Shown here: positions 2,874-45,700 of the stretch, piece after piece | Layout of the letters: each line of letters starts with the position of its first letter | Position numbering within the stretch: the first letter of the stretch is position 1 | Source of the DNA: Oculina patagonica | Taxonomy: Eukaryota | Reading direction: 5' to 3' | Assembly (NCBI RefSeq): GCF_052425735.1 | Contig: NC_135759.1 | Coordinates: forward strand, 30,814,001-30,878,000 | DNA length: 64,000 nt | Notes under the pieces: model-generated | Seen by the model: the letters and a program-made list of their open reading frames with translations, nothing else | Databases searched by the model: none | What the model was told of the DNA's origin: nothing | Program-made: the position numbers and the translations under genes

Positions 2874-4920
2874 CGCGAGTTAATTCACAACTGAATTCAG
2901 AATCCAACGAGTGCGGCGTTTTTTTCAGTTTAAATTATCTTGTCATCTATCATTTTCCGGAAATTTGCGGGACAGGTTTCTTCATCAAATCTCCTCTCCC
3001 ATTCAAAATCGGTTACCGCTTACTGAAGTGGCTTTTTTTACTTTGTTACAATTTGACGGTATCTCAGTCTCGTTATATCCCTGAAAGTAATAAAGATTAT
3101 CGATCACAACATGCAAAACCTATACGACAACTAGAAAAGAAAGTGGATTTAAAACTGCACAATAAATATCGAAAAAATAATTTCATTAATTCTGTGTTGG
3201 CTAGTCGTTGCAAAAATGGAGCACTTTTCTTTTCTGTTGTTGTTGTTGACATTTAGCAACTTAAAAGATGAACTGCTGTTTTTAAAACGAAATTATAACG
3301 TCTTACCGACGTATTTCTTTGCTTTGAATATTAGTTTTTTTTCACCTTTGGTCCGGCAAAGTTGAATTGTGTCAAAAATCCACTTATCCTTGTAGAAAAG
3401 CTTAAAGGCAGATGTTTTAGTTGGCTTAGCAATATTACTTGCGTGTTTTCGGTTGGTGATGAACATAAGTGACATTTTCCGGTTGAATTTGAATTAATTC
3501 TAACAAATATCCGATTTCAGTAAAATTTGTGTAATAACAAGCAGCTAGAACAGCTAGAGATCTTTACTTCCGAGATTTGCAGTGGTAAGAACCTGAGATG
3601 TACGCTAGGTAAAAAACAACTTCACGGTAAGGAGAGGGATTGTGTTAGATATAACAAATAATTACACAAGGAAATGTTAGGGGCAAAACTTACAAGCGCA
3701 GCTGCTGCCTGCGGTAGTACATTGTAAAGCGTTTCATAACATTTGGTGTGGTAAACATGTTAGGAAATTTACCGGATGGTGTGATAGGGATTAATTAAGA
3801 ATTTTGGCTTTTATCGACGACACAGGGACTCACCAGGACGCGTGTTTTTTTTTTCATGTATAATTCACAACTACAAGGCATTTATTTTCTGAAAATAAAC
3901 ACACAGAACAAATACATAGCTATTTGCTATAATTACTTGTATCATTGAAAGGAACTCGTTGTTATGGAAATTACATACGAAAATGAAGCAACACAAGATA
4001 AAAAATAATCGGAGCAACGACAATTGATTATAATCCGAAACTGAAATTAAAATTGGAATTTATAATGCAAACGAGTAAAAGCGATAAAGATCAAGTATTG
4101 ACACTGATGCGACACATCAATGAAGAAATGGAGAAGAATGGTTGTTCTACACATGCCAGGTAACTCCTTTAGTGTATGAGTGCGAAAGAGAAAGTAGACT
4201 TACAACAACAAAAACCCAGTAACTGAGGACGAAACTGATTATTGAAAACAAAACAGCATAATCCTTTCAGGCCTAAAGCGTATAATTTCGATTCAGTGTT
4301 TGTTATAGAGTTAATTACTTGAACAGTCCTCTCGTATGCAAACTAACAAGGGAGAATCTCCAACGGAACCATGGCTTTTTGTTTGCATGAAAATCTCGTA
4401 GACTTTTCCTCACATCTCTGAGCTTTATTGTCCATTTTATTCTATATTTAACGGCTTTCCTTTCGTGTTTAAGTTCATGATTGGTTAGGAATAATTGGCA
4501 ACACATTGCCGAAATAATTTTCATCAACAACTTTATTGGTTAGCGTCGTTCAGTGTCGATGGTAAGTGAGGGAAATAAAAGGTCTTTCACGGGATTTTAG
4601 TTCGCAGTGGGAGTTTAAAAGTATCCCCCCTCGAAAATTCACAACAGTACGGGACAAGACAACCTGAACACAAATGCAGTAACAAAACCAATAACAACAT
4701 CTAGATAAAATACAGCAGCCAGAAAAGAAGAAATCTTTGCCGAGGAAGATAAAAGCGCCAAACTTTTAGATCAAGCGCTCTTTTATCCGTCCTCCCCGCT
4801 CTTCTGGTAAAAAAAGAGAACCTGATCTCAGTTTTAGGATTGGGTTCTGAAAATTATAGTATCGAATAGTACTCTATACATGTAATTCCAGTAATATCAT
4901 ACGGTTTCGTCTTCTTTATT

Positions 4921-5842
4921 TTGGTGCCAAGAGAAATCTTTAACTCCCCACTCGGCAAAGTGCGAAGCAATGCTTCTGATGAGAAAACCGCATATCGGTC
5001 CTCTAAATTCGATCATTATCGGAGAAAATCGAATAGACTGGGTGAAACACACTCGCCTTTTGGGCGTCACTATCGATGACCGGCTGGCCTGGTCACATCA
5101 TCTTACAGATGTAAAAAAGAGTTTTGTGAACAAACTGAACCTCTTAAAGAGGAGTTCGCTCTTAAGGAGAGACGCCCTTCTGGATTTGTACTTTAAGGTC
5201 ATCCTGCCAGCAGTTCTTTATGGTCTTGTCGTCTGGGGCGGTTGTGTTAATGCAGAGCAACTAAATTCTTTGGAAGTGCTCCATTGTAGGGCGGCCAGAG
5301 TGATCAGTTACAACTTGCCCCGCGATATGCCATCCGCTGAAGTCTACCAGTACACGAAATGGAGCACACTAAACTACTTATACAAACTCCGGATAATTAA
5401 ACTATTTTACAGGGTGGTAAACGGTGAAGCACCAGCTGCATTGTCACACTTAGCGAAAAAAGCCAGAAGAAACAATAATATCGTGGTCCCTAGACTTAAT
5501 TCATACTTTGTAAAAAATTTAATTGGACATAGGGGGGCCATCCTATGGAATGCTGTTTCGTCGTATAATACAGGATCCCAATTTTCGGTTTTCTATCGAA
5601 AAGTGAAAAATGACAATTACATTAAGGAGCTTAATTTCAATGCTCAGTCGGTTCAGTCACTCCCTAGGCATTACAATGACTTTAAATGTTGTTAATTGTT
5701 ATGTAATTAATTATTTTTATATAAGTTACGATCCAATTTAGTATATAAGTATTTAGTAGTAATTTAGAAATATATTAGTTTATTAGTATTTAGTATAATA
5801 CACGACCCAACAAGCATTATGCTTTAAACCCTATCGTGTGTA

Positions 5843-5873
<31 letters not shown>
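4921..5873 (+). mobile_element. 5'-truncated non-LTR retrotransposon (CR1/L2-like): C-terminal part of the RT ORF, 3' UTR and (GAT)n tail
   Basis: ORF 4970-5695 has LLGVTIDDRLAW, LYFKVILPAVLYG..VW and RGAILWN, typical of the LINE ORF2 C-terminus. It is followed by an AT-rich UTR, a short stem-loop (CACGA...TCGTG) and about 10 GAT repeats at 5843-5873. Confidence 0.85.
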
Positions 5874-5874
<1 letters not shown>

Positions 5875-5997
5875 ACTTGCACTCCGTTTTTTGCTTACAT
5901 TATCTTTGTAACCTCCATCACAAAGCTAGGATAAATTCTTAGCGTTTATTTTATAAGAGAAAAAAATCTTCCTACATAATAATGTGAAAGCCTAGCC

Positions 5998-6340
5998 TAA
6001 TATATACTACTTATTACCGAGAGTGAGGTCATACGGGGATCCACGAGGCCTGAGATGACCGAGGAGCGGGCCACAGGCGAGAGATCCGTGACCGAACGGA
6101 CGAGAGTTAATGGCCTAGCGCACAAGCACCGGGTGAACCCCGCCTGTGGCCCCGCGCAACAGAAGATCGGAATGCATCTCAGGTGAAAAGATAGTACATG
6201 TCGGTATGTCGCGCAATGCGCAGTAGCTTCCACCAAAAAACCATGAAAAACCCCCGAGCCGAGAATCTATGCCCGGTCTTACAAGAAAAAGCCCGCCAGC
6301 AGCCAATCAGAGCGCGCGTACTATTGTAGCCATATAATAA
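5998..6340. repeat. Interspersed repeat, unclassified (GC-richer block)
   Basis: Abrupt GC shift, bounded by TATATACTACTTATT and GCCAATCAGAGCGCGCG..ATATAATAA; resembles repeats recalled from cnidarian genomes; no TSD confirmed. Confidence 0.4.
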
Positions 6341-7028
6341 TATGAGTTAATTGAATTTGTGAGAAAGTACCAGAAACTGAAAGAACTTGTATAACCTTTA
6401 CCTGTGGCTGGGTTTACTTTCACTTTGCAAATAGGACAATCGGTGTTTTTTCTGAAAGTACTAACATTCAGTCCTATACCCAAGCAAACAGAAGTTACAA
6501 AATTCTCGACAATAAATGTAACCAAATTTCCACAATAGCTTATTTTGAAAAAGCGCGATTTCCTTGGCTGGGAGTATCCGTGACAGCACTTATAGAGGAT
6601 AATTGATTATTATTGGGAGGGCAGGGAAGCGGCAAGTAAAAACTTCTTGACTGAATGCCGAACGCTGAATGCGGCAACGCTATCATGATTTCAGGGTTTA
6701 TTTTAAGTCTAGCTGGGGTTATCAAACAAGAAGCCACCTCTACAGGTGTATTAGGGTGGATTCTCTCGAGGAAGAAAAGTACACGAAATGTCTTCTTCCT
6801 TTAGGAAACACGTGTTGACTGGTTCAGTTTGTTCTTCCATGCTGTTTTCTAACTGTTTCGTTATCTTCAATAATTAACGCAGAAATCACCACTGCATTCA
6901 GGGTTCCTCCCGGTATTCCGCTGCACTGTATTTGTTTATCGTGTCCCCTCAAATAATACCACCCGCGTGAATACTCATGGCTCAGGGACTAATTTTGCTA
7001 GACTTGTTACCCTTCAGTGCACGCTATT

Positions 7029-8090
7029 CTAAAATGGTAAGAAGCTTTCTTCTTTAGCTAAAGTTATTGGATTTGTTTCACCGATCTCATCTATGGCCAC
7101 TAAACGAAGGTTGCCAGGTTCCAGAGGAATCAGTTCCATTTCATCTGCAGAATTAGAGTCAGCGGTAATCAGTCCATTAGTGTTGATGATCGGCGCAGTG
7201 ACCTGGTACGAGACTGTCTGGCACAAAACCGCTGAAATTGCTCGGCGAAAGTTCCGTACTTTCCAGGCATACAGAAACTGATTTAAAGAGCAGTTCACCA
7301 ACGGGAATAAAAACTGCAGGTCCCTCAGCCAATGAATAAACATGCAGTCACATTCGTCACAAAAATTGATGACGTAAATCATGATAAATGACGGTAGCAA
7401 ACACACAAGGAATATTGCTAGAATAGTGTAGAAAGCTCGTGTTAGATTTCTCTCCATTGATATGGCGTCCAGCTTGATTTGAGTCTGTTTAAACCAGTGC
7501 CAGCGAGAGATTTGAGCTTTTAATCTTTGATGGATGCGGATGTACGAAAACGTTAATATACTGATTATTATGACGAGAGCGGTGTTCGTGAATATAAACG
7601 CAAACAAGTAAAATCCAGTGATGAAGTAAAGGCATGGTAGTGAAACAGATATCACCCATATCAAGACCGATATCATGACGATTGTTTTGGTTGATAAGAG
7701 CCTCTTGTAGTAAGACATCACTGTTAGATATCTGTCCAGGGTTAGCGCAGCAAGACTCAACAACGACGCTGTGTATGAAATAAAAAACGTCAAGTGAATA
7801 ATCCAAATGTTTTCCATGACCGGGTATTTCATGGCTTCCCGAATGTGGAACACAATAAACACCGGTTCAGTCAAAGCTCCAACGACCAGATCGCTAATAG
7901 CCAACTGCAGAACGAAATAGTTGAATGAAGTCTTTAGTTCTTTATAAGGATCCTTAATTATTGCCACACAAACTAGAACATTTCCAGGCACAGTGACCAG
8001 GCAAAGTACCACAGATACCGACGCCGTGAACACGGACAGGGTAAATGGCGGCCAAATTTCTTCACATAAATGCTTGATAAAAGGCATCAT
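7029..8090 (-). CDS. Orphan class A GPCR, paralog 2, 353 aa, single coding exon
   Basis: 7TM with GN, LAISD, DRY, CLLP, NQFLY; clearly paralogous to 1917-2873 and 14876-15952. Probable 5' UTR splice acceptor (ttttaacAG) at 8124-8125. Confidence 0.93.
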   Translation of the reverse strand: MMPFIKHLCEEIWPPFTLSVFTASVSVVLCLVTVPGNVLVCVAIIKDPYKELKTSFNYFVLQLAISDLVVGALTEPVFIVFHIREAMKYPVMENIWIIHLTFFISYTASLLSLAALTLDRYLTVMSYYKRLLSTKTIVMISVLIWVISVSLPCLYFITGFYLFAFIFTNTALVIIISILTFSYIRIHQRLKAQISRWHWFKQTQIKLDAISMERNLTRAFYTILAIFLVCLLPSFIMIYVINFCDECDCMFIHWLRDLQFLFPLVNCSLNQFLYAWKVRNFRRAISAVLCQTVSYQVTAPIINTNGLITADSNSADEMELIPLEPGNLRLVAIDEIGETNPITLAKEESFLPF

Positions 8091-28935: not shown

Positions 28936-31900
28936 CTAATACACCGTCCATGATAACTGTTTCATACGCCCGCCACGCAGCATGGCTTCTTCAAGAGCTT
29001 GACGGGATCTGTCCGTAACGCGAGGGCAGCCATCAAATATAAGAATGTTTATTCTTGGACAGCAAGCGAGCAGTGCCTCAATGCTGACATCTGTTATGTG
29101 AACACAGTGTGACACTTGAACTTCCTGCAAAGTAAAGAAGTCAAAGAAAAATCAAGAGCTTACAGTCATATCTTTTAATACAGTAAAGCTCTTCGAAGAC
29201 CTTTCGAAGGGGGCTTAATCCCAGCTTAATAGAGAGGGGCCTTTTAGAGACGGGAGGCTTATTTTAAATCATACAGTTTAATCCCGATAACTCAAACCCT
29301 CAATGACTCAAATGTCTCACTGAATCGAACATTTTCCCTTCCCTTCCAGGTCATTTTCTTACTAATTTTACTCTCGCTAACTCGAACCTTGTTTATTTTC
29401 CTTGAAGGTTCGAGTTATCGGGATTCAACTGCATATCAGTTGGAGTTCATGTAAATATGAAATAAAGGTATTAATAAAGGGGATTTATTAATGTTTTAGT
29501 GCTGTTTTGAAGGCAAGCAAATCTCTCTTTCGGCAGTCGATTTCAAAACTCAGGACTGACAATGTGTCAGTACGAATTAGGGAGAACAACAACAAGGTGT
29601 TATTTGAACTGCAAAATTACTAGTTACTTCTCAAAAGAAGAACGGCGATTGAAATAAAAAAGGTGACACACCCCTCCCCTAAGCGAACGTCTGGAACAGG
29701 CTAAACATTGTACTTACTTTAAGAGATTGTTGACATATTCCACTCGTTAAGTGCATTATACCATCATCAGTTACCTGCAAATTATTTTAAAAAGTCAGTT
29801 ATATAATAGAAAAGCCCACATTTTTATTCAGTCCACTTATTTAAACAGGATTTGAATATAACATTTTGTTCCGGCAAATTATATATATATTTATATATTA
29901 ACAATAATTTTGTATTTTATGGATAACTTGCTTCCATTACCCTAGTATTAGAGATGTTGAGACTTTGAAGAAATCTGCAGTTGAGTGCTATGAGCTGAAG
30001 TGATGCATCTGTAATGTTGACACATCCACATAAATTGAGATGTTCCAAATGACTGCAGTGTTGAGTCAGAGAAGCAACTCCATCATCTGTAACATAAACA
30101 CATCGGCGGAGATACACTGTTTGAAGGCGGCAACAAGAGGAAAACACTTTGCTGATACCTGTAAAACGAAGAAAATGCATTGTATTACTGAGCCTCGTTA
30201 AAACAAATTAATCTTCACCCTCTGTCACCTTCATGCAGTTTTCATGTGGGTATTCTTTTCATCTTTGCTGCTTTAGGAATTCGCTCATGATAAAAATTGC
30301 AAGTTTGTACTTCGAAATCGAGGCTTGGTGGCGAAACTAGTCAGTCGGACGTAAACATGCATAAGGGCTATTGTTTCTCAAAGCTCTCATAAGCAACTGC
30401 TCCTGCAAGCCACCATGACCATCTCTGGAAAGAACCAACTGCCTGGTCTTTTCCTTGGTTTAAATCTCTTGTAAACGTCCACTCAAAGATTTTTGATTCA
30501 ACTCTGGGTCATATTAGTAAGCACTTCAATAAAAGAACACACTACTTGATTACATTTATTGTAGTATAACAATAAGATGATTTAAGGCTGGAAAAAGATT
30601 TATGCTAAAAGCGGCTTAGGTAAGCGACAAGTCTCTATTGTTTTAGTGTGTGGTTGCTTAGCTTACAAGCGCTCATTCTCATAAACAACCTGAGCTCTAG
30701 TCAAATTCCTGATGTGGTCACTTACAAGAGCTTGACTGTTCATGTACAGTGCAATATTAACAGAAATGTATAGTAGTCAGGGTTTGAGACTAACATTTTT
30801 GCTAACTACAACCTTTCAGCCTTACCCAGTCACTGATTAATGTTACAACCTAAATAATGCTTGATTTCCCCAGCCTGCGTTGCAGACCAACTAAACCCCG
30901 GTACAGTCTAAATTTCCCAGACAGGCTGATAATTAGCAGAAACAGTTTTCTTTCACTTGTCGCTTTTGTCACTGGAAAGTCCTAAACAAAGTTATCGTTT
31001 GGTGCTTTTCGGTAACTTACTTAATAGGCTTGTCCGTATTCTTTGATATATGTCAACAGTGAACTTGTTAGATCTGTTCTCTCAGAGTCAATTTCAATTT
31101 GGGGTTTCTTTTCACAAAACTGCCTTAAATTTCCACTAGACATTTTGGCTAGTGAAAACCCAAAATCTACTAGGCAAAACTGCATTTCTACTAGCCTTTG
31201 GCTAGTTGGCTTCTGTAAGTCTCAAGCCCTGGGTAATGAGTACTTAAATTGAGTATTACTTACACGAAACTGCCCTATGACCAGACATTTCTATCACGTT
31301 TTGCAAATTTGCAACCAAGGAAAGTTGCATGTAGCTACTAGCTAGTCCCACTACTATGTTAAGCCTGCTCACAGGCTCACCTTTGGACCACAAAGCAGTC
31401 TCTTTCATGCAGCTTTGCCACTTGTACAAAAGACTGCTCACTGGCTACATGTACATTGTACATTATGTTTTTTTGTCAAAAATGTGCCCTTTCAAGATGG
31501 TAGGGAAATTAAGGGCTTGAGCCAGAATCATCACATACCTTTAGAAGTGATACTCTCTCTTGAATGCTTGGTAGCATTTAAGTCCAATTTTCGCAAATTT
31601 TTACAAATGCAGAGACAAGCAAGTCCATCATCTGTTATTGTGCACTCACACAGCTCCAGCTCTCTTAAGGCAGGGTGTAATACCTTAAAAAACATAAAAA
31701 AATGCCCAGTCTATAAAAGGACAAACGAACATGACTTCTTATGGTTTGCAATTCCTTCATTTATAATTATGTAATTAGTATATACTACTATAACAGTGGA
31801 CAGCGTTTTTTGCACATGCTGATTGGCTACTCAAACTCTGAAAATCTTTTGCTATTCACCTCAGAGCAAGGAAAACGAGAAAATATTTGAAAATATTGTA

Positions 31901-34900
31901 ATCTTTGACAGGAATAAATTAGTCAAAAATCATCCTTTTGGGCTATATTATCTCACTGTTTTAGTATAAAAAAACAGCTATTCACTTCAGTGTCAGTGGC
32001 TAGTGGTGAATATTAAACTCGCTGATTCACAGCAAGGTAAGTATCCACCACTAGGCACATTGACTTCGGTGAATAGTTGTTAAATATTAATAACAACATT
32101 GTTTGTAACAAAGTGCATGAATTTACATGTAACAACAGGTTTGATGACTTTTTACATAAACCTTTCAAAAATGACAAATAGGAGTCATGAATGGTCCCTC
32201 AAAATGTCGCAGTGCTTGCAGTGCTCGCAAAATCTTAGTGGGTGCTCCTTTGCTCGTGCTCGCACATTTTTACAAGTGCTCGCATGCTCGATTTTTAGTG
32301 GAGGTAGGTTTTTGAAAAGTGCTCGTTGCTCGCAAGGCTAATTTTTGTCAATGCTCGTGCTCGCAAAGAAAAACGCTGTGCTCGCATGCTCGCAAAGACC
32401 ATTTGATACCCCTACAAATCATGACAATGTATGAACAAGCAAACAACTGTACATGTTCAAATGTGTTCATCAAACATTAAAAGTTCGCTTTGGTTCTCTT
32501 ATATGTATTTAACATAATACATGATTTGAAATAAGCACCAGGTCTCTAATAAGCCCTCTCCCCTTTCAAAAGGTCCTAAAAAGAAATAAGTCCCCTAGAA
32601 GCTTAAAAGAGCTATAGTATGTGAACTAGGAGTATCTTATTACAGAAAATTAAAGCTCATGTTAATTAAGGTATTTGAAATTAAAGCATATTAAATTAAG
32701 GTGAATAATATTTTGAGGAAAACTTACTCCTGAATAAAGGAAATAAATATGAAAGAGGAGGTAGATTTTTAAAATGAAGGAAATTACCGGTAACATGATT
32801 AACATAAGGAAGTGCAGTTTTTGGTGACAGCAAGAACAAATTTTGTTTCAACTGAACATTGAAATTGTTTTGGCCAAAGTCATAAGATGTTTATGTGTCA
32901 GATTTCGAACTGCTCTGATAATTTCACAACATTATACATGTAGGATTTTACATTGCAAAAGAAAACAGTTTGTAGAAAAGAAAGTCAACTATGTCTGGAC
33001 TGGATCCAAAATTTGGGGAAATATAACGTTGCAGAAATTAACGCTTCACTTAATCAATGTTATGGAAATTAACGCAGACAAAAATTAATGTGAATTTTTA
33101 AAATTCGTGTTAATTTCATGGAGCGTTAATTTCCTCTCAACAAGGGAAAAACACCAAATTCTCAAAAACAACATCTGTGTTACTGTACATGCCATAAGAT
33201 AGCTAGCTATAGTTTATAGGAGAACAAGAAGCTTGAGAAGCTTGAGAAGCTTAAAATCGGGCGCTTAATAATTAGCTATCTGTTTTGACTTGAAAAGCAG
33301 GGTACAGTACAGTAAAAATCACTGGAAAAACAGTCACTTAAACCTATTCAGGCCGGGAGGGGGGGGGGGGGGGGGAGCTTTTGAGGCCCGCGCTGACTTT
33401 GGACGCTTATAACTTTTTCAAGATTCAACCAAACGCTGCCAAACTTTGCGCGTTTATCTAAAATTTATCTCGCAATAATCTGGTAGGATTAGTTATTGTG
33501 CCAGTAACTTGAAATCATCATGGCAACGTCATTTTGACAGGCTTGTTTTCCCAAATTTGAATTTTTCGTGTTTCTATTTAATAATGAAAATCTGGAATGT
33601 TTTCAAGATTGCATTATTACTTAGGGCCTGTTTACAAGCAGGTAGGGTAACCCTAGGTGCTAGGGTTACCCTAGCAAGAGGGTTAGAAGATAGCCCGGGT
33701 TTACAAGCAAAATTCGCAGGTAGGGTAACCCTACTTACCCGGGTCAACTTACACCGGTTACGCTTCAGTTAACCTTGTAAAATTTTGTCGTTAGAAGCTG
33801 TTATTCGAAAATAATTCCGTTCCAGTGCAAAAATACGACAAATTGTGAATGAACACGATGTTTCTTGGTCACAATTCGCTGTTTTTGTCGGTATTTTTAA
33901 ACATATTTAGCTTCTTGGAGCCAAAATAAAGTTGTCTCGGGTAGGCGAGTTATCCCTAGCAGAGCGTTTACAAGGCGCTAGGGTTACCCTAGCACCTAGG
34001 GTAACCCTAGCACTCAGCTAGGGTTACCCTAGGTGCTAGGGTAACCCTAGCGCCTTGTAAACACGTCGATGAAAATAAGAAGAAATGTGGGAGCGCTAGG
34101 GTAACCCTCCTGCTAGGGTAACCCTAGCACCTAGGTTATTAATGACATAATGGTCTCAAATTATAAAAATATATTTCGCACAATACAAATAAACGATTGA
34201 ACTAGACGTCTAGAAGATATAAATTTGTAACACTTAGCAAAGTGCAGCCTTTTCGCAATACTTAATAAAGGCGGGGTTTTACCTGAAGACCAATTTTTCC
34301 AACGCTTTAGGTGGCTGACGCATTTCTCCTAATCAGGTAACTACTATTGTCAAGAAAATGATCACAACTTTTTGACCAATGATTAGGTATTTGTTTCATA
34401 CCATTACTGTAATAGCAACTGGTGAAGAATAGTAGTACTGATCCAAAGTATAAGGGCTGGAAAACACTGAAAACCATTTCAGCCGCGTTTCAAGGATTCC
34501 AAAAAAGCTTTACTTATCCCATATATATTTGTTTTGCAGTATTTTGTTAATTTTTGGACAATTTTGGGGGATGTCTGGGAGGCGATAGTTTTTCTCAAAG
34601 GATTAGTAAAATTTAGACAAATAAGAAATATTGGAGATTTAATGTGATTTTAAAATTTGAATTTGAAGTTAAAAATTGGTGGACGGACACCAAACAGTCT
34701 CCTGACAACCCGGAGTGCTCTTGCGAGGGGGTCAACTGTTTGGAGGTGTTTCCATTCTTTTCTTCAATCCCTTCTTTAAATCTCTTAAAGTTCCATTCAA
34801 ATTCAGGTAGAACCCCACCTTAAGTTTTGTTCTTGTGAGAAAACAACAGAAGTCAAAGGTTGCGTGATATAACCAACCATGGATTTTAATTCTCCCTCCC

Positions 34901-37900
34901 TTTCCATCTCCTTAGCCTTTCACCCCCACCTGTCCCTCCCTTTCTACTCTCATTCAATTTAATGTTTGTTTACATTTCCTAACCAATTCAGTATCGTACT
35001 AATCTGTGCCAAGCAACCAGATAATAACAGAAATTTGCCTTAATTTTGATCTCCCATACCAAGACCTTAGAGTATAAACCGCTAATAAAACAAAACACAC
35101 TTGATAATAATTTTCTGAGGTTATACACCTTGCAGTATTAACGTACTAACGAACTTGATAACAAACCCCATGTCGTACTAAGGATTTTTACTGATCAACA
35201 TAGAAAATAAGTTCACAAGGGTTTGTTCCCAAAACGTTTTTTACTGTACAGAGGGTCTGTATATTGACCTGTAACTTGTATACCGTATTGAAAAATTAAG
35301 AACGAACCGACTTCTGCCCGCTACCATGATATCATGTTGAAAAATTAGCTCGTTCGAAACCGTAGTAAAATCGTTAGAGACAGACAAGATACAGCCGTTT
35401 ACTGGCAGTCTTTGAAAATCCTGAATTTCGTCAAAATGAGCCAAAATAAAGTTTTAAAATTTCCTTTATCAATATGGTTCTTATCTTTTTATTCAATTCT
35501 ATGAACTGCTTTTATGCAGTACTGTCCACAAAGATTTCAATTTCCTCAAAGTTTCGGGACAAATGGATACAAAATATTTCGTGCAGAATGTAATTTGAGT
35601 AAGCGAATGTTTTCGCGTCTATAAATACTCCAAGCAGTGAATGGAAAACCGTTTTGTTTTAATCGATGAGTACCACTTTCAAATAGTTATAATCCATAAA
35701 AAATAACAATCAGATCAGAATACAATAATTATTAATGTAAGGTCTCGCTATTATGTCTCGGCAGAGATACTTCTTTTTGCAAGTTCAAATGTATGCAAAT
35801 TTCGTGTGAAATGTAATTCGATTCCATTGTCTTGTTTACAAAGTCTTTCTTAAGAAAGTTGTATTTTCGTGAATAAAACCCATTGGCCTGTTTTGTTTTC
35901 CTGATCATGTTTGTCTGTGATTTTTACAAAACATGTGGTCTTTTTTTTCGGAACTTTAAGTTGTACAAAAATTCCTCTTTTGAACACAGATGTCACTTCC
36001 GGAATTTCTCATCTAAAATTCAATTGGTATTTAATTATAATTATTCGAAGTTTTCATTTTCGAGTCATCTTTTCATTTGATAGCATTACTGATCTCGTAA
36101 AAAATTCCATTCAAGTTCACACCAATACTGTACATTGCCAATGTTTTGCTGACGTCTTGAGAAGTGTCATACTAACGTCACTAGTCAAATCTAAAATATA
36201 TCCAAACCAAGTTGTGCAAACATTCTACTCTTTGTGACAGGCGACTTTGACGCCCAACTGTGCGGAAATGAAAATCGACATACTTCTTGCTAAATATATA
36301 AAAAATAGTTTTAAAGTGGAGTCCGCCTCAAAAAAATGTACCGCCAGATCACACTGCTATTTGTAGAAACCAGCAAAGCGTCTAGTTTCAAAGTTTCCCA
36401 CAAAAACATTGCGTGACATGAATGACGTTACCCCTTTTATTTACAAAAATAGCTTCAACTTGTCAAAGCAACTATAGTTTCACAATGGTGATTATTAGTA
36501 CTTTACCCGTTAAGCTTTTTTCTCTGTCCTCCCGCCGAAGCAAAGAAGAGAACCAGATTGCAGATTAGCCCAAAAGTCGACCCAGTGTTCCTACAACGAT
36601 TTACTGTCAAAACTGAAATGAAACCGATTGGCCCAGGCTATCCCCGTCATTTTTAGCCGACAGAAGACTATCGTCTAGGACGACCAAAGGGTAAACTATA
36701 AATCGGCCACGCCCGATTAATAAGTCCTTGACGGTTCTTGTCGTTTTTCGGTGCCTATTCATCTTCGGCATCTTTCTCATCCACCTCTCGTTCTGTCCTG
36801 TGTCTGTCATCACACGAAAGAAAAGCTGATTCTCAAAAAATCTGCCACAAAGGAAATTGACAAAAACAATATGAAAACCATATATCGAAAGTTTCTTATT
36901 CTAAAATTTTATCATACGTCTTAATTCAGAGCTACAAAGAAGTTCCTCCTTTTGAGTTATTGATACTGTTCTTACAGTACCTCTTTCCACTAGCGAAATT
37001 TTACAAAATTCCTTCGCGGCGAAAAGGTAGCGCGAATCCAGAACAGACTCCAATCGAGAGAGTGGGTTAATTCTAGATTACTATTAATTAACTATTACAA
37101 CATTCATTTTTAAAATAGTTTCCCAAGCCGACTAAGCTAACTAAACGTCGAGTGTATCTTTCAGTAAACAAAACATGCCGTTATGACGCCGGAAATCCAG
37201 CTCACGCATACTATACCCCGTGACTCACGCAAACCTCCGACTTACGTGCTACTACAGTCATTCCTTTCTAAACATTTTTTTTTGACCACCACCGTACCTT
37301 TCTACCCAAAAAACTCATGAAACCGCCCGGTTTTAACCTGTTTTAACCTTTCAAAAATTAGAGCGTTCGAAACTAAATAAGATCCGTAATCACAAACAAC
37401 ATACAGCCGTTTACCAGCACTCTTTAAAACTCCTGAAACCCTTCAAAATCAGGCAAAATAAATCTTTGAAATAACCTTTATCAATGTTTCTTATTTTTTA
37501 TTCAGTTCTATAAAATGCCTTTCATACACTACTGTCAAACAAAAATTTCAATTTCCTCAAAGTTTCAAGACAAAAGAATAACAAATATTTCGTGCACAAT
37601 GTAATTTGATTAAGCCAATATTATCACGTCTAAAAATACTTCAAGCAATTCAGTGAAAACCCGTTTTTTTTTTCGTATCAACGAAAACCACTTTCGAATA
37701 ATCAATACATGAAAATAACAATAAGATCAAAAGGAAGAAAGGAACCTTTCTAATTATTTGAAGACTTTCAAAGCCGTGATATTATGCATCCAATCCGCGA
37801 TAAAATTTAATTACAACAAAATCCAAGTTCTCATTTTGAAGTCCATTTTTTTCAGTTGATACCTTTATCCAACTTGTGAAAAATTCCATTCAAGTTCCTA

Positions 37901-40900
37901 TTAATACTGTACATTCCCAATGTTTTGCTCAGGTCTTCAGAAGCGTCTTACTAACCAAATCTAAAATAATTCCAAAACATGCTGTACAAACATTCTACTC
38001 TTTGTGACAAACGACTTGACGACCAATTGTTCAGAAATGAAAATCGACACAGTTCTTGCTAAATAAAAAAAAAGTTTTACGGCGGAGTCAGGCTCAAAAA
38101 ATATACCGCAAGATCACACCCCCATTCATAGTCAGAAACCAGCAAACCATCTAGTTTGCTAAAAAAAACACTGCGTGACATCAATGACGTTACCTTTTTC
38201 ATTTACAAAAATAACTTTAACTTGTCAAAGTACCGTAAAAACCCGCAGATAAGCCGCACCTTTTTTCCAAAAATTTTCGCTCGAAAGCGGGGGTGCGGCT
38301 TATCTGCGGGAACATTCGGAAAAGGTGCCGTAAATTTTCGTGGACTGATGCTAATTTATGGAAAAGTATGTAAATTAATATTACACAAAACTACAAGAGA
38401 GTACCGGTCATTGCTTTTGCAAGTTTGACAGCTCCTATACTGTTTGCAGTGTCGACAATGGCCTATAACTTTAATAGTATAAATATTGATACTTTACGAG
38501 CGAGAAAATACCACGAGTATTCACGAGTAAGATGGCCAATTGTTTCTTTCTCATTTTGCACTTCGATGGAAAATTTGTCGAACTGATTATGAAATTCTCT
38601 TCATGCAACGAGTTTATCTCCAATAGATGGCTCCCAAATCTCCTTAATTTGTCGATATGATAGCCACGAAACCCGAACGCCTCCATCGCCATCTTGTTTT
38701 GCTTTACGTTCTCGCCCTAGTCCCATATTTCGCATCCGATCAAATGCCTGGTTACTAAGCTACGAACGTTTTGCAAACGCAAGTTGTTCAATGTTGTGAC
38801 ACAAAAATCTATGGAAAAACTGCGTTGAATGAAGAAATACCTGTCAACAAATGCCAGAAAAAGATCACCCATAATATGTCAAAGTTGGTTTTCATTATAT
38901 TAAAGAGCTCAAATTGTGGGTAAGACTGAAGTATTCTCTGTTTCAATGTTCATTGAGTTTACGTTCGATGAAGAAGACTTCCTAAAGACTCAACTTTGGA
39001 TTTTTGACTCGACTTTGGATTTTCTTTGATTCACTTTCAAAAAACTTTTTTCCAACATTTGAGTTGTTAAACTCAGGGTGCGGCTTATCTGCGGGTGCGG
39101 CTTATCCGCGGGTGTTTACGGTAAGTGCAATTTCACAATGGTGAATATCAGTACAGTATGGGGCCCAGTTCTCGGCCGGGTCCAGTTCTCGGCCACTTTG
39201 TGTTTAACGCGTTTTTTCACACTCCAGTTGAATTAAAAGAAAAAGGTATTTCCTTCAAACGATAGACTGATTCATGTGCTTTAAGTATCTTGAGTTTGAT
39301 CGTTCAATTCGATATAGAAAGCTCACAAGTCGAATTTACGCGGAGGTAGGTGAATTTGCATTCCCGAAAAATTTGTTTGTTTACGGCTCCTTAAAATTCA
39401 TGGATGTAGTTAAATTCGTATTTTATCCAAAAGCCCCCACCATACGAGCTAATTTTTGGCATGTGAAACGTAGAATAATTCAGCTTTCTGCTTTAGTTAA
39501 CTTTTCGTTGAACCGTTGTATTTTTTGGTCTTAATTTACTTCGAAATTTTTTCTTGCGACGTTTGCGTATTTGCCAGTTCTCGGCCACCCTGCTCGCTAT
39601 CACAGCTTAGCGCTTGGTTTTTAATATAATTTCATCTGCTGCTGCCAGAATGAAAGAAATAAATGTTTTAAAAATAAAGTTCAATCTTATCTCTAAGTTT
39701 TGAGCTGACTCTTGTCTTGTCTATTATTTCTACAACACCTAACTCTTTCAAGACCTTTTCACTGCAAAATAAACCATCTAAATGCATTGGTCACACAATG
39801 CGGTTTTGCCAGAACCTGCACATAGGCAACTAGGCGCGTTAAAATCCTTCTTTTCTAAAGTAAAACAAAGCCTCATAAAAATAATTTGGGATCGATATAA
39901 CATAAATAGGTTTACAGAGTGATTTTATGACTGTGAAAATTAATTGAGCATTTTTTTTACAGATAATTACGCACAAGCTTTTTAGTGGCCGAGAACTGGG
40001 CCAAGGTGGCCGAGAACTGGGCCCACAAATGGAGCTTTTATTTTTATTATTGCTCGGGAAAATTAATTTTTGACCGGTCGATAGCTTTACACCAAAAAGC
40101 TGAATAATGTACCTAGCTCTGGGAGAAATTTCAAGTTCCTGCGGTTCTTCTGAGGTAAGAAATACAAGTTTACGTCAAAAGTGGCCGAGAACTGGGCCCC
40201 ATACTGTACTTTGCCCCGTAAGCTTTTTTCTCTGTCCTTCCGCCGAAGCAAAAAAACACAACCTGATTACACATTAACCCAAAAGTCGACCAAGTGTGCC
40301 TGCAACGATTTCCTGTCAAAACTAAAATGAAAACCATTGCGGTATGCGTCACCCGTAGCGGTTTTGTAGCAACCCCAAGCTATCCCCGTCTTTTTGGCCG
40401 ACAGGAGACTATGCTCTAGGACGACCAAAGGGTAAACTATAAATCGGCCACGCCCGATTAATTAGTATTTTCATCTTTCAAGACTGAAAGAACCTATCGT
40501 AACATTTAACAGGGAATTTGGGTGACTTCTTCTTCTTGCAACGCCTAAAATGGACATTAATGCAGCTGTAACAGACCTATACACTGCAGGATCAGCAGAA
40601 TTTCAGATCTGACAAGTATAAAGTCAGTAAATAAACAACATTGTGTCTAGATACCCGGCAGCCGGGAAGTGTTTTCAAAATACTACATACCCGGCAGTCT
40701 GAAATTATTCTAGAATTTCCACGGAAAAACCAATCCAATCCTCCTCAAAACTATAGATCTTTGCTTAGAAATGCCAAGCGATTTCAATTATAGTTTTGGC
40801 TTTGTGTTTGAGGAAATTTTCGAGCTTGGGCATACTACAAAATCTTGATTCTTCGACACTTAGAAAAAATTCGTACTCTGACTCCGGTGTCAACTCTTAT

Positions 40901-42588
40901 AGAATAATTTCTACAAAAACTGAAGTTGAAACCCTGCGAGAGTATTCGATATTTGCTGAGAAATGTGAAGCGATTCTAAATAATGTTTTGCTTTTGTTGT
41001 GGACGAATTCTCTTGGCTTCGGCGTACTATAAAATCCTCGACTCACGGGCACGGTTGTTCAAAAGACTAGATACCCGGCAGTCAAAATTTCATGAATAAT
41101 CAATACATTCAATATCCACAAAAATGATCATTGAAACCTAGCTCCCGAGAGTATTTCAGTATTTCAATTTTCGGTCGGAAATACCAAGCGAGTTTTTACA
41201 ATGTCAGTTTGGTTTTGCACAAATTGTACGAATTTTATGTGACTCACGGGCACGATTTTTCAAAGACTACATACCCGGCAGTCAAAAATCAGATCAACAG
41301 AACCTCAACGCTATTAGGCACACGTTGCGAACTGATCTGAGAGTGGTCTCCTCACTGAGGGGACAAATCCCCTGAATTTGAAAAAATCTACTTGAGTGAC
41401 TATATATAGAGGAACGCTTTGTATTTCTATTTAACCGAGAGCTTCGTCGCTTCCAACGCTAAGCCGTTTAGCCCACAGAAGAACTTCGTCGCTTCCAACG
41501 CTGAGTTCGTTTTGGCGCGAAAAGCAACACCACGTGCCACCTTTGTCACGCCACTAAAGTGTCACACCGGAAGTTACATCGGTGGCGGACTTTCGTCACC
41601 GAACGCTCAAGCGTTTTGTAGCTATTTTGTACTACTTTGCCGAGGCAATTGTTGAGGCCTTAAGTTGGAAAATCGCTTGGTATTTCTACACCGACATCTC
41701 AGCAGGTTCAAATGGAAATTTTGATGGAAAAACGGGAAGCTTTTTTGACTGCCGGGTATGTAGTCTTTGAAAAATCGTGCCCGTGAGTCACATAAAGTTC
41801 GTACAATTTGTGCAAAACCAAACTGACATTGTAAAAACTCGCTTGGTATTTCCGACCGAAAATTGAAATACTGAAATACTCTCGGGAGCTAGGTTTCAAT
41901 GATCATTTTTGTGGATATTGAATGTATTGATTATTCATGAATTTTTGACTGCCGGGTATCTAGTCTTTTGAACAACCGTGCCCGTGAGTCGAGGATTTTA
42001 TAGTACGCCGAAGCCAAGAGAATTCGTCCACAACAAAAGCAAAACATTATTTAGAATCGCTTCGCATTTCTCAGCAAATATCGAATACTCTCGCAAGGTT
42101 TCAACTTCAGTTTTTGTAGAAATTATTCTATAAGAGTTGACACCGGAGTCAGAGTACGAATTTTTTCTAAGTGTCGAAGAATCAAGATTTTGTAGTATGC
42201 CCAAGCTCGAAAATTTCCTCAAACACAAAGCCAAAACTATAATTGAAATCGCTTGGCATTTCTAAGCAAAGATCTATAGTTTTGAGGAGGATTGGATTGG
42301 TTTTTCCGTGGAAATTCTAGAATAATTTCAGACTGCCGGGTATGTAGTATTTTGAAAACACTTCCCGGCTGCCGGGTATCTAGACACAATGAATAAACAA
42401 ACATCCTAGCTACTCACATTTGCAAGATTGGAGTCCGTCAGAAGACCTCGCTTGGAGAGCAAATTAACCAGCTTTGTCTTTATCTCTAATGGAAGCAGAC
42501 CTAACGAAGTTTCGTGGTCTGGCAACTGACAAGCCACTGCTCTCAGGCAATGATTTTGTAAACTACTTACCACTGCAAAAACCGCCAT
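28936..42588 (-). CDS. AMN1: Protein AMN1 homolog (cysteine-containing leucine-rich repeats), 5 exons, 259 aa
   Basis: Exons 42588-42418, 31683-31539, 30158-29941, 29774-29718, 29124-28936; all GT-AG, phases 0,1,0,0, total 780 nt. The protein (LLSKRGLLTDSNLANVLHP..., CPRINILIFDGCPRVTDRSR..., KQLSWTVY*) matches recalled vertebrate AMN1 end to end, including the terminal WTVY. Confidence 0.92.
32179..32414. mobile_element. MITE-like element with TGCTCG internal repeats
   Basis: Imperfect TIRs TAGGAGTCATGAATGGTC / GACCATTTGATACCCCTA; about 10 copies of TGCTCG. Confidence 0.5.
33624..34136. mobile_element. PIF/Harbinger-type MITE, right end truncated
   Basis: TTA|GGGCCTGTTTAC start, the same terminus as 60439-61009; many palindromic TAGGGTAACCCTA subrepeats; matching right terminus missing. 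Confidence 0.65.
35340..36722. repeat. Copy A of a ~1.4-kb diverged direct repeat in AMN1 intron 1
   Basis: Colinear with 37353-38230 + 39124-39153 + 40209-40460; both copies end in TAGGACGACCAAAGGGTAAACTATAAATCGGCCACGCCCGATTAA. Confidence 0.85.
38233..39121. mobile_element. Non-autonomous Tc1/mariner/pogo-type element (TA TSD)
   Basis: TA|CCGTAAAAACCCGCAGATAAGCCGCACC ... GGTGCGGCTTATCCGCGGGTGTTTACGG|TA; the empty site is visible in copy A. Confidence 0.88.
39154..40206. mobile_element. Non-autonomous Tc1/mariner/pogo-type element (TA TSD)
   Basis: TA|CAGTATGGGGCCCAGTTCTCGGCC ... GGCCGAGAACTGGGCCCCATACTG|TA, a perfect 24-bp TIR; internal CCAGTTCTCGGCC repeats; empty site in copy A. Confidence 0.9.
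40639..42391. mobile_element. Foldback/MULE-like element: 650-bp TIRs, 453-bp spacer, 9-bp TSD
   Basis: Arms 40639-41288 and 41742-42391 are reverse complements with about 4 mismatches seen; AATAAACAA at 40630-40638 and 42392-42400; four TA(G/C)ATACCCGGCAG subrepeats per arm. Confidence 0.93.
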
Positions 42589-42704
42589 ATTTTCGTATCG
42601 CGATGGGTGGCAACCGCTGGCATTTTTCTGTAACACGCGGGCTCAAGAAGAAGAACAAAGTGGGCGCCAGTCTCCTCGCTCTCTCTCCTCACACGTTGTC
42701 CAAG
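42589..42704. promoter_or_regulatory. Bidirectional promoter / 5' UTR region shared by AMN1 and DERA
   Basis: 116 bp between divergent ATGs; CpG-enriched; ATCGCGAT palindrome; YY1-like AATATGGCGG over the AMN1 ATG. TSSs are not known. Confidence 0.75.
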
Positions 42705-45700
42705 ATGTCTTCCCATTTAGTTCGTAATCCTGGAGTTCCGCTCGATTTAGAGTGGGTAGGCAGGTCACGAGTTAACCTTCCTGCAGTTAAACGACGTGCA
42801 GACACGCTAAAAACCCGCCGATCGATAAAGAAGCAATGGCAAGCGGCTTGGCTTCTCCGAGCGGTGACTTGCATAGATCTAACCACCCTCTCAGGGGATG
42901 ACACTGCGACCAATGTTGCTCGGCTGTGCTTCAAGGCACAAAACCCCGTGAGACAAGACTTGCTGGAAAGCATGGGTATGGCCGACAAGGGTATAACCAC
43001 AGGTGCCGTTTGTGTTTACTCATCGCGCGTTCCGGACGCTGTCAAGACTCTCAAGAATATTGAGTCCAATGTTCCAGTTGCTTCAGTGGCTGCAGGATTC
43101 CCAGCAGGTATAAAACGAACCTAACTCTGATCGATGATTTTATTTTGTTGCCACTACCCCGCCCCCTTCAACTCCAAACCCCTCCTCATCGATATGTTTT
43201 AGTACTTGTAGAGGCCGTCATGTCAGGGGTGTAAAAAATTTACATGTTGGGGCTGTATTTAGAGGTGGAGCCTTTGTGGGGCCCATGGCACCTAATACGT
43301 GGAAAGCTCTTGTATTGCATTTCAAGCAAGTTTTAGAGCAGTAGTGATTGTTAGTGCTTTTAAGAAAGTTTTGCATCCTGGTTGTAACCTCCCTCACACC
43401 CCCTGTCCTCCTGGTTGTATTAAGTGTGTTTGTGAGCAGAGTGTCTCTCCAGGCCAGTGCTTAATGCTAGTTTCTGTATCAAAGTAACTAGGAATATTGC
43501 ACTTGAACAAAATTTATTATTTTGTTCTTGGAGGAATTCAATAAGTACAGTATAATTTACAGGAATTCAATAAGTACAGAATAATTTTCAGGATTAGTAG
43601 TCACAAGAAATATAATGTGGGGTTTTATTACAGGTCAGACTCCTCTCAAGCAAAGACTGGAGGAAATAGAGACTGCCGTGGCTTCAGGTGCCACAGAAAT
43701 CGACATTGTAATCAGCAGAGCATATGTACTGGAGGGAAACTGGGAAGCACTTTATAATGAAGTGCAGGCAATGCGCAAAGCTTGTGGAGAAGCTCATCTT
43801 AAGACAATTATTGCCACAGGTACTATTATTTTTTACTTGTATGTTCAACCTTCCAAGTTAAGACCATTTAAGTCGCCATGGCAACTAAAATTTTGGAGCA
43901 GGCATTTAAATTAGAACTGAAGTCGCCAGCCTGGCGACTAATAATTGAGAAGAAGGATTGAAAGTGTGAGCTTAATTTAGCGCCTAAAATTTTTCACTTG
44001 CGACCAAACTTGAACAGAAGGTGGCCAAATGGCCACTAAGGAAAAAAATAATTTTGGAGGGTTGATGTTGTCTGAGGTCATCAGTCTACAAATGAAACAG
44101 ATAGACTGAAAAAGGGGTATTGCAGTCATTGTACCAGTATGCCAAACTTGTCCCTTTTTTAATTTTAGATTCTTGTGCCCAGAACAGGGTTGTCATTTAA
44201 GTTGAAGTTATAACCCATATCATTTTGCTCTGTTTGCAAGTGTAACTTCAGTTGACATCTTCACCTGTAACATCAAGTGAACTCAGCTGTAACAGGTGTT
44301 ACAGGTTACAGTGCCCTGCAAGATGTCACATACATGTACACTATAACTAAATCACTTTACCTTACCCCTTTGTAAATACTTTTCGACTGACGACATTAAT
44401 ACAATGTCATTAGTGGACGGTGAGCAAGAGTTTTAGTTACCTTTTGGCAGTGGTGTATGAAAAGCCATTTACAAGTACTGGTATAACCAGTTGGCCTTCT
44501 GTTGATCAATAGAAAACACCTGATTAGCTAACCATTCATATTGCAAGTTGCCAATTGTCAGCCACTGGGTTGTTTCACATTGGGTTCACATGCATTTTAT
44601 TTTGTCATACAGGTGAACTTGGCTCTTTAACCAATGTATACAAAGCTAGTTTGGTTTCGATGATGGCTGGCTCAGATTTCATTAAAACGTCAACTGGTAA
44701 AGAGTCGGTAAATGCAACATTCCCAGTTGCATTGGTTATGGTGCGGGCAGTCAGGGATTACTATCAGGTATTACATGTACCTGTAGTGTATGGGCATTTT
44801 GCCATGAGAGAAATTATACAAGTGTTGACCATCCAATAAAGAACCTAATATCTTTCTAGCTGCAACTGTTAAATCCATGTTGGGCACTCTTATTATTCAG
44901 TTTTATCTGCGTCGTTATGCTGCCTAGAAGAAGAGATTTGCTAAACATTGGGCTAAAACTTAAAAGGTTAAAACCAACTTGGTCCAAAAGTTTTAAATGG
45001 GATGACTTTTCAATGTTAGCTTGACATCATCATCAGGTCAAAGATGAATATAATTGGGCACAAATACAAATGTACGGTAAAAAGAATTCCTAAGAGAAAC
45101 AAATTATTTGGTAAAGCTATGATGATGATGATGCAATAAGGTATTTGTATGCAGAGTTATGTTGCCATTTTGTAAATTATGAACCCATAACTTTTCTGGA
45201 TTTTGTAAACTGATCTATTCATTTTTGATTCTTTTTGTTTCTTTTGTTAAGATTTTTCTCAGAAAAAATTGAGTCAAATACATGTATAAATAAAATACAG
45301 TAAGAATAACTTAAAGAGTGTCATATCCAAAGAGTGGCTCTTTATCCCCTACTTCCAGATCGAATTGGAATTTAAAAGTGCTGGTTTTTGTGGAGGGAGG
45401 AAAACTGGAGAACCCAAACAAAAACCCTCAGAGCAAGGTTGAGATCAACAACAAACTCAACCCAGGTTTTGAACCTGAGCTCTCTCACCACTTTGTGATC
45501 CCAGCTCCCCCCAAACAAATTTATTTATCTCTCTGTTTTTCTAATTTACATGTTTAATGCTTTTCATAAAAAAAGTTAAGAAACCTTATTTGCTTCCTGT
45601 TTCAGCAAACTGGTCACAAAGTAGGCTTTAAGCCAGCAGGTGGGATCCGTAGTGCCAAAGATTCTTTAACATGGCTCTCCATGATGAAGGAAGAACTTGG

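Follow-up and report, generated by a model that had tools for sequence, protein, structure and literature searches.

A foldback-shaped Mutator-like element in the first intron of an AMN1-like gene of Oculina patagonica

The window analyzed here is a stretch of 64,000 nucleotides from the coral Oculina patagonica (assembly GCF_052425735.1, contig NC_135759.1, positions 30,814,001 to 30,878,000 of the forward strand), and positions below are those of the window unless another sequence is named. It contains a 1,753-bp element with two long inverted arms (40639-42391), which lies in intron 1 of a minus-strand, AMN1-like gene for a leucine-rich repeat (LRR) protein and close to the start of the divergent gene DERA. 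The element is very probably a non-autonomous, foldback-shaped Mutator-like element (MULE), a deletion derivative that inserted into this intron recently. The predicted splice donor of intron 1, GTGAGTAG at 42410-42417 of the minus strand, was read directly, and the frame of exon 1 is open up to it. A polypyrimidine-AG acceptor with its AG at 31685-31684 precedes exon 2, whose first base is 31683, and the joined peptide stays in frame; intron 1 (31684-42417, minus strand) is therefore 10,734 nt long, with the element at its 5' end. Position +1 of the intron is 42417 and the element starts at +27, so that the donor consensus remains untouched, as do bases +1 to +26 of the intron.

A repeat finder placed the inverted arms at 40639-41288 (plus strand) and 41742-42391 (minus strand), 650 nt each with 453 nt between them. 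Direct comparison of the arms matched 646 of 650 positions (99.4%), with four mismatches at arm positions 296, 328, 450, and 595. The nine letters AATAAACAA stand at 40630-40638 on the left of the element and again, without a difference, at 42392-42400 on its right, and form a perfect target-site duplication. MULEs duplicate 8-11 bp of their target, typically 9 bp. The original prediction had described arms about 99% identical, a perfect 9-bp duplication, and an element ending at 42391, 26 nt short of the donor of an intron that starts at 42417, and all of these hold. Arm sequence accounts for 1,300 of the 1,753 bp (74%), so the element consists mostly of two very long inverted arms, one of the features of foldback (FB-like) transposons. 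The 15-mer CTASATACCCGGCAG occurs eight times in the element, four times in each arm, when no occurrence is expected by chance. The arms also contain degenerate repeats spaced by ∼200 and 384 nt, in units of about 200 bp that share 60-80% identity. Tandem Repeats Finder detected no tandem array of subrepeats in the arms, just three tiny repeats of 8-10 bp in ∼2 copies.

The termini of the element led to a much larger relative. A pair of arms 9 kb apart pointed to L061, a 9,630-bp element on another chromosome (C6:38339407-38349036), which has terminal inverted repeats (TIRs) of 1,029 nt that are 100% complementary and a 9-bp target-site duplication of its own. L061 carries one open reading frame (ORF) of 1,658 aa (2977-7953 within C6:38339250-38349200), in which Pfam identified a MULE transposase domain (PF10551, E 1.6e-13), the RNaseH-like domain of ZSWIM1-3 (PF21056, E 8.5e-37), the WRKY/FAR1-like DNA-binding domain ZSWIM3_N (E 2.6e-10), and a PHD finger (E 7.4e-07). 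Hence, the autonomous MULE with the same ends that the original prediction had proposed to search for exists in this genome, in agreement with its classification of the element as a foldback MULE. Over its full length the window element can be aligned with the termini of L061, at 99.4-99.6%, and so shares its termini with an element that encodes a MULE-type transposase. Its positions 1-651 correspond to 158-808 of L061 (99.4% match over the left arm), position 652 is a single filler C, and positions 653-1753 correspond to 8591-9787 of L061 minus 96 bp, which were lost between two 29-bp direct repeats. Judged by this alignment, the element is a deletion derivative of the 9.6-kb autonomous MULE whose 7.8-kb interior, including the whole ORF, is gone. 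Of the left TIR, the derivative retains the outer 650 nt; the right TIR is present in full, together with 171 nt of 3' subterminal sequence. The foldback shape is thus a by-product of an internal deletion in a MULE with long TIRs and not the outcome of a tandem-subrepeat array.

The same alignment accounts for the spacer, or loop, between the arms (41289-41741, plus strand), for which the letters at the junctions were read and BLAST gave matches to L061 8591-8761 and 8829-9787. Position 41289 is the last base of the left-end match, 41290 is the filler C, 41291-41461 are the 171 nt of 3' subterminal sequence, and the part from ∼41433 to 41741 is the inner right TIR, left unpaired. The idea that the loop is a captured RNA gene or another special cassette was rejected; it is residual element sequence, and an Rfam scan and a tRNA scan of the spacer were both empty. 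L061 contains four copies of the 15-mer in each TIR, all of them inside the outer 650 nt. Since both arms of the derivative keep all four copies, the putative transposase binding sites would be in place and the window copy could still be mobilized. As an observation on the L061 protein itself, a long low-complexity repeat of the type GSAVDKDDG occupies about residues 480-700, between the N-terminal part and the DNA-binding domain. Two long ORFs in other frames, at 4415-5095 (plus strand) and 4448-5335 (minus strand), overlap each other and are by-products of this repeat.

We analyzed the distribution of the family by searching the window's own genome (529 Mb) with one arm as the query. The search returned 297 first-look candidates, and all 40 that were scored had 99-100% identity; the spacer recurs as well. 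A 38-nt terminal pattern, allowed up to two mismatches, occurs 148 times (72 forward and 76 reverse) vs. 0 times for a control pattern, corresponding to ∼75 elements. An intact transposase ORF is present once in the genome, and the next best match is only 51% identical. This second MULE transposase gene (C5:7315471-7318233) has an open frame of 1,326 aa and, going by its identity to the L061 transposase, is a member of a separate, related MULE family in the same genome.

Among the loci fetched, 29 of 35 complete copies are flanked by perfect 9-bp duplications. These are all different, 95% A/T in composition and in 18 cases pure A/T, a base composition by which the family targets AT-rich 9-mers. 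Six of the 35 paired termini are without matching 9-bp flanks (loci L006, L011, L038, L047, and L051); these may be adjacent or nested elements or rearrangements between copies. Copies range in size from 754 to 2,600 bp, in addition to the 9,630-bp parent, and abortive gap repair would be expected to produce a spread of this kind. Three copies, namely the window copy and one each on C13 and C9, measure exactly 1,753 bp and have different duplications. The same structure at three sites with different duplications means that the derivative itself has transposed, and its independent insertions number three or more. The copy on C13 is the sister of the window copy; the two differ at six sites and have four derived bases in common, and only two substitutions in 1,753 bp are private to the window copy (40966 T and 41088 T). 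Mean pairwise divergence among 47 distinct arms is 0.84%, and arms drawn at random from different copies share 99.2% identity. From this low divergence the family looks currently or very recently active. Two 1,726-bp copies lie 1.4 kb apart (C4:29880748-29882473 and C4:29883854-29885579). Because their duplications differ (TAAAAAGTA vs. TAAAATGAA), this pair suggests local hopping rather than tandem duplication.

The 9-bp duplication, the termini of a transposase-coding element, and an empty target site together with independent insertions are the features that place the element among the MULEs. The empty site came from public sequencing runs, kept as contigs, that we compared with positions 39600-42650 of the window. 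A 683-nt contig that covers 40460-40629 and continues with 42392-42496 is present both in run X3 (organism B) and in run X9 (organism C), which come from different studies. The contigs join 40629 to 42392 and skip 1,762 bp, the length of the element together with one copy of the duplication, with 170 nt matched on the left and 105 nt on the right of the joint. The nine letters fit either side and the target is single-copy, as in a precise empty site. About 5 of 367 flanking positions in these contigs deviate from the window (about 1.5%). In run X1 (organism A), a 227-nt contig (40439-40665) crosses the left junction without a mismatch, and an empty-site joint is missing. It follows that the insertion is younger than the split of these haplotypes or species; it is real, recent, and absent from two other coral samples.

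The element had been called very young, in part because of the 99% identity of its arms. The absence at the same site in two other coral runs upholds the call, but the arm identity does not work as a clock for this insertion and was rejected as such, since arms of unrelated copies are equally similar. The arms of the window copy differ by 0.6% and those of the family by 0.84%; arm identity therefore dates the burst of the family and not this insertion.

These data also bear on the explanation that the inverted repeat is an artefact of fold-back during assembly or, alternatively, an old insertion with arms homogenized by gene conversion. Long-read chimeras can create long inverted repeats, and the sole read evidence for the filled site comes from a run that is possibly the assembly's own sample. 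However, the perfect 9-bp duplication agrees with the single copy of the target in the empty-site contigs, the identical 1,753-bp structure is present at two other loci with its own duplication each, and an independent short-read contig spans the left junction. In addition, the arm mismatches are common to the sister copy in a tree-like manner, and the window copy has merely two private substitutions. An assembly artefact is contradicted by the duplication, the sister copies, and the empty-site contigs and was rejected, as the original prediction had anticipated from the duplication and the mismatch pattern, and we regard this explanation as a whole as extremely improbable.

Elements of this build are known from other organisms. 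In Drosophila, the FB and FB-NOF elements have two long inverted arms and 9-bp duplications, carry a coding insert in rare copies only, and are classed with MULEs; FB arms are arrays of short tandem repeats and vary in length. The coral element is like FB in consisting mostly of two long arms with a 9-bp duplication and unlike it in that its arms are not made of short tandem subrepeats. Animals also have Mutator/Foldback elements with composite TIRs and 9-bp duplications (PMC3169594). One of these, Tm1 of root-knot nematodes (PMC3169594), is together with Drosophila FB-NOF the nearest described parallel. Both Tm1 and the coral family are animal, MULE-related elements with 9-bp duplications and long composite TIRs that contain internal repeated motifs, and both comprise one or very few transposase-coding copies and many non-coding derivatives (PMC3169594). 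They differ in that the TIRs of Tm1 are made of 13-15-bp tandem repeats with a mean arm identity of 93%, whereas the coral arms have degenerate units of ∼200 bp and 99.4% identity. The Tm1 transposase is Phantom-like and has 496 aa, compared with the 1,658 aa of the L061 protein with its ZSWIM-type, SWIM, and PHD domains. Mu/MuDR of maize belongs to the same superfamily and also has 9-bp duplications; its deletion derivatives are moved in trans, as is probable for the coral copies, and its insertions tend to lie at or close to gene 5' ends, as the window copy does, but the TIRs of Mu are about 200 bp long vs. 1,029 nt in L061 (PMC3440606, PMC6446971). MULEs in general prefer to insert in or near genes (PMC6446971).

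The insertion site is indeed close to the starts of two genes. The AMN1-like gene has 57 codons in exon 1, in an open frame (42418-42588, minus strand) that continues in frame in exon 2. On the opposite strand, the first coding exon of DERA (42705-43124, plus strand) begins with the ATG at 42705 and was identified as an ORF matching solved deoxyribose-phosphate aldolases (E 8e-6). The two start codons (42588 and 42705) are just 116 nt apart on opposite strands, which makes for an unusually compact bidirectional AMN1/DERA promoter. The AMN1-like ATG is about 200 nt from the element and the DERA ATG 314 nt from its right end; by these positions, the element lies about 0.2-0.3 kb inside the compact bidirectional promoter region. 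As to the host gene, exon 3 encodes an FBXL2-type, cysteine-containing LRR (E 8e-39), exon 1 contains no Pfam domain, and two protein-atlas look-ups returned LRR clusters alone or nothing named. The gene is a candidate orthologue of AMN1, a short, cysteine-containing LRR protein without an F-box, in that its N-terminus and its C-terminal ...SWTVY resemble human AMN1; no tool confirmed this label.

A long, near-perfect inverted repeat at a clear position in intron 1 raises the question of what it would do in RNA. The AMN1-sense RNA of 40589-42450 is predicted to fold at -1339 kcal/mol, compared with about -455 kcal/mol for shuffled sequences. The predicted structure has 647 of the 650 arm positions paired in register and contains one G-U pair and three mismatches. 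Folding thus reproduces, as an intramolecular 647-bp stem, the near-perfect 650-bp hairpin that the original prediction had expected in the pre-mRNA. The element contains neither AATAAA nor ATTAAA on either strand and no polypyrimidine-AG acceptor; two GTGAGT strings in the far arm were the sole splice-like letters noted. Without a poly(A) signal or an acceptor in the element, read-through and normal removal with the intron are the default expectation.

By analogy with other animals, the stem could plausibly be a substrate of ADAR and Dicer in a hexacoral. Activation of double-stranded RNA sensors, which the original prediction had named as well, would be a hypothetical effect here. In Nematostella, endogenous small interfering RNAs (endo-siRNAs) from transcribed inverted duplications are loaded into AGO2 (PMC7713132). 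A screen of species for ADAR hyper-editing included a coral and reported palindromic DNA transposons that are edited by themselves (PMC5625713). The coral element resembles the palindromic Harbinger repeats of Xenopus in that a single copy of a DNA transposon folds on itself into double-stranded RNA, with no need for a second copy; unlike the coral element, with its 650-bp stem as a predicted substrate, the Xenopus repeats are ∼220 bp long and their editing was observed (PMC5625713).

The RNA data available for comparison were sparse: the runs listed contained just 5-6% of the query words, and one of them, X20, was examined. Transcription of the locus was not seen in X20, and the contigs of this run held only short fragments of the family with the flanks of other copies. 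The mismatches in these contigs were of mixed types (T>G, C>T, A>G, G>A, T>A, and A>C) and not clustered as A-to-G changes, a weak test given that it relies on contigs and on a family with many copies.

We considered on this basis whether the hairpin is diced into endo-siRNAs or hyper-edited at meaningful levels and whether the insertion is polymorphic and modifies AMN1 splicing or the shared AMN1/DERA promoter. The predicted stem begins 26 nt from the donor, distances of about 200 nt and 314 nt separate the element from the ATGs of AMN1 and DERA, respectively, samples without the insertion exist so that alleles can be compared, and hexacorals have both ADAR and AGO2 endo-siRNA pathways (PMC5625713, PMC7713132). 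Against these points, the insertion left the donor consensus and the intron's first 26 bases intact, and neither a poly(A) signal nor a polypyrimidine-AG acceptor occurs in the element. The stem would depart with the intron, hence be nuclear and short-lived, and the X20 contigs show mixed mismatches with the flanks of other copies instead of A-to-G clusters. The ∼75 near-identical copies also blur the assignment of small RNAs, which are hard to trace to this locus except via the junctions or the two private bases. Such a function therefore seems unlikely, and the net effect on AMN1 and DERA would most likely be small or none.

A more specific function would be that of a trap like Mu killer of maize, in which the intronic copy makes a TIR-only hairpin that seeds small RNAs and silences the sole autonomous element and the rest of the family. 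In favor of it, the arms share 99.4% identity with the TIRs of the family's one intact autonomous copy, the host promoter lies ∼0.3 kb upstream, and there is no terminator signal in the element. Mu killer itself is a precedent, as a rearranged copy whose hairpin was proposed to be transcribed from a flanking gene and to silence its family, but later work on Mu killer questioned this read-through model (PMC3440606). The Mu killer hairpin also includes transposase coding sequence (PMC3440606), unlike the coral stem, which consists of TIR only. Moreover, many other copies could serve equally and nothing singles out the window copy; the family also appears to be active even now, with 0.84% mean divergence and a perfect autonomous copy. 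We consider such a trap highly improbable; in it, a housekeeping-type bidirectional promoter would drive a hairpin source, and small RNAs from the TIR sequence would repress the genome's single autonomous MULE. If it were true, carriers and non-carriers of the insertion would differ in transposon activity.

We thus return to the reading of the element as a recently inserted deletion derivative, which arose in a few steps. A 9.6-kb autonomous element lost 7.8 kb of its interior, and such copies are probably moved in trans by the product of the one intact transposase gene in the genome, a mechanism that we infer. A copy was cut and pasted into the AT-rich 9-mer at position +27 of intron 1, beside the AMN1/DERA promoter, and transcription of the intron would yield the 647-bp near-perfect RNA stem, which would leave with the intron. 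Several observations weigh against this reading. An Ulp1-type protease domain was not detected in the L061 transposase (Pfam at E 0.01; phmmer against PDB), and the 15-mer is a putative transposase binding site, judged by its position and repetition. Absence of the insertion from organisms B and C may be a difference between species and not a polymorphism within one. Run X1 is possibly the assembly's own sample, and its junction contig reaches just 27 nt into the element, less than our bridging rule of 31 letters. RNA run X20 has zero depth on AMN1 exon 1 and on the flanks, and transcription, donor, and hairpin are accordingly predicted features.

In kind, the element is an ordinary deletion-derivative MULE, with its possible effects on RNA and genes being inference only. 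It nevertheless documents, in a reef-building coral, a family of DNA transposons that seems to be active now or to have been so very recently and that consists of one intact autonomous copy and about 75 elements with 0.84% mutual divergence. Its insertion beside a bidirectional promoter provides a ready presence/absence marker. If heterozygotes exist, they would offer a natural experiment on the effects of a 650-bp intronic RNA hairpin on editing, dicing, splicing, and promoter activity in a cnidarian.

The MULE is not the only young repeat at this locus. A second, unrelated, very young high-copy repeat lies at 39960-40462 of the window, 177 bp to the left of the MULE. A genome search with it gave no fewer than 1,193 first-look candidates; the 40 of them that were scored all showed 98-100% identity. 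This repeat seems to be absent from the same site in the X3 and X9 samples, too, because the empty-site contigs stop matching the window at 40460.

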